Assembly (NCBI RefSeq): GCF_963676685.1
Contig: NC_092348.1
Coordinates: 4,526,001-4,590,000 of the forward strand
Source: Mytilus edulis
Taxonomy: Eukaryota
Length of the DNA: 64,000 bases
Reading direction: 5' to 3'
Notes under the pieces: generated by a model
Databases searched by the model: none
Seen by the model: the letters and a program-made list of their open reading frames with translations, nothing else
Told to the model about the DNA's origin: nothing
Position numbers and translations under genes: made by a program
Part shown: positions 40,501-46,174 of the stretch, piece by piece
Position numbering within the stretch: the stretch's first letter is position 1
How the letters are laid out: each line of letters opens with the position of its first letter

Positions 40501-43500
40501 GCATAATTTTATGTGCTTACAAATAAAAGCGCATAACATTCCCAAGTAAATTAAATTTATGGGACATCCATAAAATTAGTACAGACATTATTTCATGAAT
40601 TTTAAAGTTATTGAGAATTTGCTTAAATGAAGTTACATCACTGAAACATGTCACTTATATTCTTGATGACTAAATTTATAATTCTGTGCATGGAACATTT
40701 GAATTTACTAAGGCTTGACAACACAGTGATGATCAATAAGTAGTAATAGTTAAAAATAACAGTTTCTATATTTACCTAATCCAAGTTTTTTCTCTCTTGG
40801 TCTCAATACCTGTAAACAATGATCAAAGTTATACACAAGTCTACAGGATCTGAAATATGGACATGGCTGCATATGTGAACAAGAATGAACAAGGAGAAAT
40901 TGTAAAAGTACAAGTCTTTTCATAACATGAATTTTACCAAAATGTGCACTCAAATTTAAATTATGATTACAAAACAGATTTTCTTATAGGAAAGGTTTAT
41001 TTTTGATTAAAAATGATTGACCTATAAAAATTAAAGTTATCCATACATGTATAAACAATCATATTGACATGATTGATGGTTTTTCAAAAGTCTTAGAAAT
41101 TAAAGATACTTTTTTTTCAAATTTTACAATTTATCTAAAATGAAGTGGCAGATTATTCTCTTTTCCATAATTCAAAAAGAATAATATGGTCAACAAATCT
41201 TTATAAAAGAATTCTCTTTATGGAATGATTGGATAAAACTGGTTGAAATGCATCTGAAGTTATAAATTACAATTTTTTCTTTGCCATATATTTTCTCTAG
41301 TTGTTTGGCCACCTCTAAGGATAACTTACAATTTTGTCTTTGCCATATATTTTCTCTAGTTGTTTGGCCACCTCTAAGGATAACTTACAATTTTGTCTTT
41401 GCCATATATTTTCTCTAGTTGTTTGGCCACCTCTAAGGATAACTTACAATTTTGTCTTTGCCATATATTTTTTCTAGTTGTTTTGCCACCTCTATGGATA
41501 ACTTACAATTTTGTCTTTCACATATATTTTCTCTAGTTGTTTTGCCACCTCTAATGATAACTTACAATTTTGTCTTTGCCATATATTTTCTCTAGTTGTT
41601 TTGCCACCTCTAAGGATAACTTACAATTTTGTCTTTGCCATATATTTTCTCTAGTTGTTTTGCCACCTCTAAGGATAACTTACAATTTTGTCTTTGCCAT
41701 ATATTTTCTCTAGTTGTTTTGCCACCTCTAAGGATAACTTACAATTTTGTCTTTGCCAACTCTAAGGATAACTTACAATTTTGTCTTTGCCATATATTTT
41801 CTCTAGTTGTTTGGCCATCTCTAAGGATAACTTACAATTATGTCTTTTCCATATATTTTCTCTAGTTGTTTTGCCAACTCTAAGTAAAACTTACAATTTT
41901 GTCTTTGCCATATATTTTCTCTAGTTGTTTTGCCACCTCTAAGTAAAACTTACAATTTTGTCTTTGCCATATATTTTCTCTAGTTGTTTTGCCACCTCTA
42001 AGTAAAACTTACAATTTTGTCTTTGCCATATATTTTCTCTAGTTGTTTTGCCACCTCTAAGTAAAACTTACAATTTTGTCTTTGCCATATATTTTCTCTA
42101 GTTGTTTTGCCACCTCTAAGTAAAACTTACAATTTTGTCTTTTCCATATATTTTCTCTAGTTGTTTTGCCACCTCTAATGATAACTTACAATTTTGTCTT
42201 TGCCATATATTTTCTCTAGTTGTTTTGCCACCTCTAAGGATAACTTACAATTTTGTCTTTGCCATATATTTTCTCTAGTTGTTTTGCCACCTCTAAGGAT
42301 AACTTACAATTTTGTCTTTGCCATATATTTTCTCTAGTTGTTTTGCCAACTCTAAGTAAAACTTACAATTTTGTCTTTGCCATATATTTTCTCTAGTTGT
42401 TTTGCCACCTCTAAGTAAAACTTACAATTTTGTCTTTGCCATATATTTTCTCTAGTTGTTTTGCCACCTCTAAGTAAAACTTACAATTTTGTCTTTGCCA
42501 TATATTTTCTCTAGTTGTTTTGCCACCTCTAAGGATAACTTACAATTTTGTCTTTGCCATATATTTTCTCTAGTTGTTTTGCCACCTCTAAGGATAACTT
42601 ACAATTTTGTCTTTGCCAACTCTAAGGAAAACTTACAATTTTGTCTTTGCCATATATTTTCTCTAGTTGTTTGGCCATCTCTAAGGATAACTTACAATTA
42701 TGTCTTTTCCATATATTTTCTCTAGTTGTTTTGCCAACTCTAAGTAAAACTTACAATTTTGTCTTTGCCATATATTTTCTCTAGTTGTTTTGCCACCTCT
42801 AAGTAAAACTTACAATTTTGTCTTTGCCATATATTTTCTCTAGTTGTTTTGCCACCTCTAAGTAAAACTTACAATTTTGTCTTTGCCATATATTTTCTCT
42901 AGTTGTTTTGCCACCTCTAAGTAAAACTTACAATTTTGTCTTTGACATATATTTTCTCTAGTTGTTTTGCCACCTCTAAGTAAAACTTACAATTTTGTCT
43001 TTGACATATATTTTCTCTAGTTGTTTTGCCACCTCTAATGATAACTTACAATTTTGTCTTTGCCATATATTTTCTCTAGTTGTTTGGTCATCTCTAAGGA
43101 TAACTTACAATTATGTCTTTTCCATATATTTTCTCTAGTTGTTTTGCCAACTCTAAGTAAAACTTACAATTTTGTCTTTGCCATATATTTTCTCTAGTTG
43201 TTTTGCCACCTCTAAGTAAAACTTACAATTTTGTCTTTGCCATATATTTTCTCTAGTTGTTTTGCCACCTCTAAGTAAAACTTACAATTTTGTCTTTGCC
43301 ATATATTTTCTCTAGTTGTTTTGCCACCTCTAAGTAAAACTTACAATTTTGTCTTTGCCATATATTTTCTCTAGTTGTTTTGCCACCTCTAAGTAAAACT
43401 TACAATTTTGTCTTTTCCATATATTTTCTCTAGTTGTTTTGCCACCTCTAAGGATAACTTACAATTTTGTCTTTGCCATATATTTTCTCTAGTTGTTTTG

Positions 43501-46174: not shown

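Follow-up and report, generated by a model that had tools for sequence, protein, structure and literature searches.

A splice-junction minisatellite in intron 2 of mussel DPM1 carries 55 copies of the authentic splice donor

How is a single 5ʹ splice site chosen when the same site is repeated dozens of times in the intron that follows it, and does the repetition serve the gene that carries it? Both questions are raised by a minus-strand gene of the mussel Mytilus edulis, in which most of the second intron is a tandem array built from the end of exon 2 and the start of intron 2. The window analyzed is a stretch of 64,000 nucleotides (contig NC_092348.1, positions 4,526,001 to 4,590,000), and all coordinates below are those of the window. 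The account that is considered likely is that the array is a locus-specific minisatellite of the ‘mirage’ type, which is spliced out together with its intron, with the first donor in use, the pseudo-donors silent or nearly so, and the repeat units subject to neutral turnover.

On homology grounds, the host gene is DPM1, which encodes the catalytic subunit of dolichol-phosphate mannosyltransferase, a GT2 enzyme. Motif and frame analysis divides the coding sequence into nine exons, from 46174 to 31572, and their splice-site-consistent boundaries sum to 726 nt, or 241 codons plus the stop. The coding part of exon 1 (46071–46174, with the ATG at 46174–46172 and the donor GAG/GTAACA, where the slash marks the exon boundary, as it does in the motifs below) translates into residues 1 to 34 of P0274, the 241-aa RefSeq isoform X1 of Mytilus galloprovincialis. 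Exon 2 (44474–44573, 100 nt) is 100% identical in translation to residues 36 to 68 of this protein. It matches the Pfam family Glycos_transf_2 (PF00535) with an E value of 4.9e-08, as does exon 4 (39382–39458) with an E value of 2.3e-05. The translations of exon 3 (40776–40809; 34 nt, comprising 11 codons and 1 nt), exon 4, exon 6 (37079–37174), exon 8 (33949–34063) and the coding part of exon 9 with its stop codon (31572–31676) also match P0274; the 26-nt exon 5 (38884–38909) and exon 7 (36349–36417) are placed by frame and splice-site boundaries. All nine exons lie on the minus strand. When exon pieces were translated and compared singly, seven proved collinear with P0274 at 100% identity, and together with the Pfam matches to GT2 these bear out the assignment to DPM1 that a preliminary description of this DNA had made.

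Additional searches are consistent with the same assignment. Identity of the exon pieces to the DPM1 of other animals is about 80%, and the protein cluster named ‘dolichol-phosphate mannosyltransferase subunit 1-like’ has members from M. galloprovincialis, M. edulis, M. trossulus and M. californianus. DPM1 proteins were recovered by a profile-free protein search with exon 8 as the query; the same exon returned sub-threshold matches only from a protein atlas and no relevant match from a sequence search of the PDB. Exon 2, when searched against the PDB, gave generic GT2 matches and one weak match to an archaeal DPMS. No Rfam family was found over 30000–47000.

Exon 2 is preceded by a good acceptor (ttttttgattgcag/T) and ends at the authentic donor of intron 2, a GTAAGT at 44468–44473 on the minus strand in the context ATT/GTAAGTTTTAC. 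The repeat unit is a copy of this junction: its 59 bp correspond to the final 48 nt of exon 2 (44521–44474) and the 11 nt with which intron 2 begins. In each unit the exon-like 48 nt end in ...GACAAAATT and are followed by GTAAGT and five intron bases, which divide the 50 full-length units equally into a TTTAC type (25) and a TATCC type (25). The unit at the highest coordinates is the real 3ʹ end of exon 2 and hence no duplicate copy. The minus-strand sequence thus agrees with the earlier statement that the unit joins the exon 2 end to the intron start and that the first unit is the exon end itself. Between the consensus unit and the real exon end there is one difference, at 44516, where the exon has A and the units have G (a synonymous GAA/GAG difference); a reference copy of the unit lies at 43851–43909 on the minus strand. 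Past the authentic donor, the reading frame of exon 2 is stop-free only to 44462. It continues as GTA AGT TTT ACT TAG, the TAG lying at 44459–44461 on the minus strand, so that the in-frame stop noted in the preliminary description is indeed present.

The minisatellite occupies 41265–44473 of intron 2 on the minus strand; Tandem Repeats Finder, which reports on the plus strand, delimits a 59-bp array at 41262–44521. Exact GTAAGT sites on the minus strand number 56, from 44473 to 41329, and comprise the authentic donor and 55 pseudo-donors. Neighboring sites are 59 nt apart in 50 instances, 34 nt apart in four and 58 nt apart in one. The array ends with a degenerate GTAATT at 41270, after which the sequence is unique. 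In all pseudo-sites (55/55) the context ATT/GTAAGT is kept, in line with the earlier claim that nearly all later units retain it. That claim had been coupled to an estimate of about 56 decoys, or about 57 donors in total; the donors are near-identical as stated, but the count comes to 55 perfect decoys and one degenerate copy, with 56 GTAAGT sites. Intron 2 measures 3664 nt, of which the array makes up 3209 nt (88%). The remaining 455 nt form a unique tail (40810–41264, minus strand) that contains the real 3ʹ splice site (tttacag/G). The terminal copy of the array continues into ...GTAATTTATAAC TTCAGATGC, and a short likeness between the exon sequence ...ACATTAGAAGTG and the intron sequence ...AACTTCAGATG may mark the point of slippage in the first duplication.

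The units are organized at a second level. Four of them are reduced to 34 nt by an internal deletion of 25 nt (44205–44238, 43522–43555, 42603–42636 and 41743–41776, all on the minus strand), and these short units mark a higher-order repeat. They recur at intervals of 683, 919 and 860 nt and are always preceded by two marked units, namely …GAGTTGG…GACATAATT and then …GAGATGGCC…. Self-identity of the array peaks at a shift of 59 nt (0.913) and again at 860 nt (0.898) and 919 nt (0.885), giving a higher-order period of about 860 to 919 nt, or about 15 units. The recurring 34-nt variants and the 860- and 919-nt peaks together are a signature of unequal exchange in blocks of about 15 units. Moreover, the full-length units (n = 50) include one set of 17 identical copies and another of 12, which indicates that the array is young or homogenized. 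The three exon-proximal units are the most divergent in the array, as expected where array edges escape homogenization.

This repeat has no counterpart elsewhere in the genome. When the whole 1.37-Gb assembly was queried with five units, 14 matches were obtained, and 14/14 fell inside the DPM1 array. Confinement to the DPM1 locus identifies the repeat as a minisatellite and not as a satellite family, and the word ‘satellite’ in the preliminary description has to be replaced, as the 1.37 Gb contain one such array, of 3.2 kb. Both unique flanks, searched against the mussel’s own genome, matched dispersed short repeats only, with no haplotig or paralogue among the results, and the unit-to-unit junction had no match (0) in metagenome contigs. 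The locus has the features of a junction minisatellite, in that a single-locus array runs head to tail, its first monomer spans the real exon-intron boundary, and the splice site recurs intact within the intron.

Which of the 56 donors is used can be read in part from annotated proteins. In isoform X1 (P0274), residue 68, the last from exon 2, directly abuts residue 69 from exon 3, and the annotated productive mRNA therefore joins the donor at 44473 to the acceptor at 40810. To that extent, an annotated protein partly shows use of the first donor in the productive transcript. A second RefSeq isoform, X2 (P0335, XP_076113177.1), is a 204-aa protein of the same Mytilus DPM1 cluster that begins with a 31-residue N-terminus and then enters exon 3 directly (VLRPRE...). 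Residues 2 to 31 of X2 are identical at 29/30 positions to the translation of 44179–44087, a stretch of about 1.6 units that passes through one pseudo-donor (...CAA AAT TGT AAG TTA TCC...) and stops at the one after it. The exact X2 peptide is absent from this window, which has no ATG at the matching position and nowhere contains the order that X2 would need, a TATCC-type unit and then a full-length GAGTTGG unit. X2 is annotated on a contig of 102,858,672 bp, as against 97,338,103 bp here, and thus derives from another assembly.

The existence of X2 implies gene-model support for a junction between a pseudo-donor and exon 3. This support is ambiguous because the authentic donor and each pseudo-donor share the preceding 47 nt, so that short reads multi-map to 56 sites. 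Intronic reads from pre-mRNA could supply the remainder of the X2 model. X2 could accordingly represent either real leakage or a multi-mapping artefact.

X2 also bears on whether the array, or its length, is a product of misassembly. The second haplotype of the locus is absent from the assembly, and mis-assembled mirages have been noted in amphioxus (PMC3087553). However, in the mussel array variant units recur in an ordered higher-order arrangement, and no collapsed or stuttered pattern is seen. Furthermore, X2 encodes repeat-unit sequence from a separate assembly with unit variants of its own, which argues against an artefact and for ongoing turnover. These variants are the one hint of copy-number polymorphism or instability. 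An assembly artefact is considered very unlikely.

The preliminary description had suggested that the array acts as a length-variable dose modulator. Splicing at a pseudo-donor would introduce the TAG and lead to decay of the transcript or to an N-terminally truncated protein, and array length would tune DPM1 output. Several features are compatible with this proposal: all pseudo-donors share the nine-base context of the authentic donor, the stop codon is in frame, and X2 consists of array sequence joined from a pseudo-donor to exon 3. Parallels come from human genes. The title of a work cited in PMC1557585 links a 31-bp junction VNTR of CBS to reduced CBS activity, and the same paper gives two proximal pseudo-sites as used in each of IFI6 and CBS. 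However, X2 can be an artefact, given that a short junction read fits any of the 56 sites, and a search of 5.8 billion clusters found its array-encoded N-terminus in no protein beyond X2’s own cluster. Splicing is normal in F7, LMNB2, PDGFA and the amphioxus Adh3 and globin genes (PMC1557585, PMC3087553), and no signal of selection was detected on the mussel donors. A hypervariable dosage dial also seems unlikely for a housekeeping gene such as DPM1. Overall, dose modulation by array length is an unlikely explanation.

The absence of a selection signal rests on how little the units vary. Among the full-length units, 13 of the 59 columns are variable, and the chance that a given six-column block would be invariant is 0.21; for the nine bases of ATT/GTAAGT it is 0.09. 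At P = 0.21, 55 perfect donors need no selection to explain them, and selection on the donors is not supported, the invariance of GTAAGT being within chance. Nor was there evidence of structural masking of the pseudo-donors. Partition-function folding of exon 2 with eight units predicts a pairing of 0.60 for the authentic donor and of 0.54 to 0.68 for the pseudo-donors, so that predicted pairing at the latter equals that at the authentic site.

A different kind of function would lie in the binding of U1 snRNP itself, with the array serving as a U1 sink (also suggested in the preliminary description), as a shield against premature cleavage and polyadenylation of an AT-rich intron, or as a means of transcript retention. 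The array does place 55 sites with six contiguous U1 base pairs (GTAAGT) within 3.2 kb, and its sense strand contains a single AATAAA, at 44319. However, 55 sites on one pre-mRNA are negligible relative to cellular U1, the donors show no conservation signal, and similar arrays without the donor motif occur within the same window. A function based on U1 binding is extremely improbable. Neither the dose modulator nor the U1 sink is supported by an array that is homogenized, whose GTAAGT invariance has a chance probability of 0.21, and whose host gene uses the first donor in X1. No evidence was found that the array is anything beyond intronic repeat turnover.

If the array is a mirage-type minisatellite under neutral turnover, replication slippage or unequal exchange would at its origin have copied in tandem the 59 bp that bridge exon 2 and intron 2. 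Block-wise unequal exchange of multi-unit segments would then have expanded the duplication to 55 extra copies. Lying entirely downstream of the authentic donor, the array would be removed with intron 2. The 55 pseudo-donors are probably competent yet silent or nearly so. By analogy with human F7, their silence probably reflects commitment to the first donor past the exon 2 acceptor, either by ‘oriented scanning’ or by exon definition. In such a scheme, U1 at the first donor would be captured in a cross-exon or scanning complex, and later donors would be ignored, as they stand behind weak acceptors and very short pseudo-exons only. The acceptor-like sequence of each unit (...CTTAG/AG) has a pyrimidine tract of 0.5, compared with 0.6 to 0.65 in real acceptors, and TAG replaces CAG. 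A pseudo-exon defined by it would be very short, at 44 nt, and would include an in-frame TAG.

A transcript that leaked to a pseudo-donor would gain n × 59 nt with a TAG at codon 5 and would probably be non-productive. The TAG of such a leaked transcript would lie upstream of seven further introns, making the transcript a substrate for NMD by the classical rule, which may not hold in molluscs. In human IFI6, the alternative donors preserve the frame, and their use yields protein isoforms; at DPM1, unlike IFI6, every extension carries a stop. With respect to selection, the array most probably is neutral or carries a slight cost, and it would not be a regulatory device. Two points count against this account. 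In classical in vitro work on competition between duplicated strong 5ʹ splice sites, the site nearest the acceptor was reported to be favored, which would predict the opposite donor choice. In addition, the pseudo-donor junction of X2, if real, would mean that pseudo-donors see some use.

Junction-seeded minisatellites are a class already described, of which the DPM1 array is a very large further example. In the published cases the pseudo-sites as a rule stay silent or almost so, and splicing normally takes the most upstream donor (PMC1557585, PMC3087553). In IVS7 of human F7, which contains a 37-bp VNTR, only the most upstream of five to nine identical donors is used (Borensztajn et al. 2006, PMC1557585). 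Across 50 F7 constructs, the pseudo-sites were functional but never competed, and when the first donor was mutated the next was activated (PMC1557585). As in F7, the first monomer at DPM1 spans the exon-intron boundary, the authentic donor stands at the head of a series of identical pseudo-donors, and the use of pseudo-donors would mostly yield premature stops. The two arrays differ in that each of the five to nine F7 copies takes 4 nt from the exon and has a weak donor (TGG/gugggu), whereas DPM1 has 56 copies with 48 exonic nt and a perfect intronic half, GTAAGT. They also differ in the kind of evidence, F7 splicing having been tested by experiment and DPM1 donor choice being read from annotated proteins. 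To regard the mussel locus as a natural test of latent donor suppression, as the preliminary description did, is a fair reading, although the test itself was done on human F7 in 2006.

Other cases are listed in the same paper. Intron 2 of IFI6 (6-16) has 25 pseudo-sites, of which the nearest two are used; intron 13 of CBS has 15 to 20 repeats, with two pseudo-sites used; LMNB2 has 10 to 15 repeats of 100 bp, with the authentic site alone used; and intron 4 of PDGFA has 16 to 18 repeats of 81 bp (PMC1557585). As at DPM1, the exon/donor junction is reiterated in the intron of each of these genes, 10 to 25 times, with low-order use of the two nearest pseudo-sites in IFI6 and CBS. All four are mammalian and, by these figures, have fewer copies than the DPM1 array.

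Among invertebrates, the ‘mirages’ of amphioxus, in Adh3 and globin genes, undergo concerted evolution and have divergent edges and unstable lengths, and normal splicing is undisturbed by them (PMC3087553). The mussel array is likewise an invertebrate tandem duplication of an exon-intron boundary with divergent edge units. The amphioxus clusters consist of two to six units (globins) or a few units, each of 10 to 160 bp, and the mussel array exceeds them in length by an order of magnitude. In the literature searched, no report of junction minisatellites in mussels or other bivalves was found.

For genome annotation, the DPM1 array is a reason for caution, as junction reads multi-map over arrays of this kind and can lead to spurious isoforms, of which X2 may be one. 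A broader conjecture is that Mytilus gains junction-seeded arrays at far more than the chance rate, through mutation at splice junctions or during transcription, and that leakage of a measurable share of DPM1 transcripts, at which X2 hints, makes a hypervariable array length shift the output of this essential glycosylation enzyme between individuals; this is judged distinctly unlikely. DPM1 is an essential housekeeping gene, and the 55 intact repeats of its strong donor may present one of the most extreme natural choices among identical 5ʹ splice sites. The largest count among the published cases compared here is 25, in IFI6. The array would be an invertebrate case on which to try the models of oriented scanning and exon definition that were drawn from human F7.

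Two of the eight DPM1 introns, intron 5 and intron 2, consist mostly of minisatellite. The intron 2 array is built from a 59-bp unit that spans the exon 2/donor junction. The intron 5 array (minus strand, 37631-38847) comprises 34 copies of a 36-bp unit and begins 36 nt 3ʹ of the exon 5 donor, with exon 5 ending at 38884. The repeat unit contains two acceptor-like motifs (CTACAG or ATACAG), and exon sequence is absent from it.

A further array lies on the plus strand at 50321-52963, in a neighboring gene named as NSMAF in the preliminary description, and is made up of 70 copies of a 38-bp unit. 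The unit carries a branch-point-like TTAAC together with an acceptor mimic, TGTCTATAG, and the array stops 20 nt 5ʹ of a real-looking acceptor at about 52983, where ttttatcttttttcttcag is followed across the boundary by GATAGACC. Because no clear exon-derived part was seen in the 38-bp unit, this array adjoins the acceptor junction rather than extending across it. Downstream of DPM1, about 400 nt 3ʹ of the stop codon, begins a G-skewed array of 155 copies of a 31-bp unit that occupies 4.7 kb (26471-31166). In total, kilobase-scale minisatellites account for about 12 kb of the 64-kb window.

DPM1 introns 1 (44900-45100) and 3 (40340-40490) also contain short dispersed repeats, each roughly 80-145 bp in length. 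A search of the organism's own genome returned thousands of first-look candidates on all chromosomes at about 90-94% identity, which suggests that these repeats are MITE- or SINE-like elements.

Two DPM1 protein models call for comment. The 283-aa Mytilus trossulus model (P0332; XP_063441620.1) has 42 extra N-terminal residues, and by translation comparison those directly before the conserved ATG match the translated 5ʹ leader in the window; its start is therefore probably over-extended. Another Mytilus assembly has yielded RefSeq XP_076113177.1 (P0335), annotated as DPM1 "isoform X2." The N-terminus of this model consists of translated repeat units, and the first 68 residues of DPM1 are missing, and with them a portion of the GT2 nucleotide-binding region. 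Isoform X2 is likely either an annotation artefact created by junction reads that map to multiple sites, or a transcript that is non-productive and was assigned its longest open reading frame.
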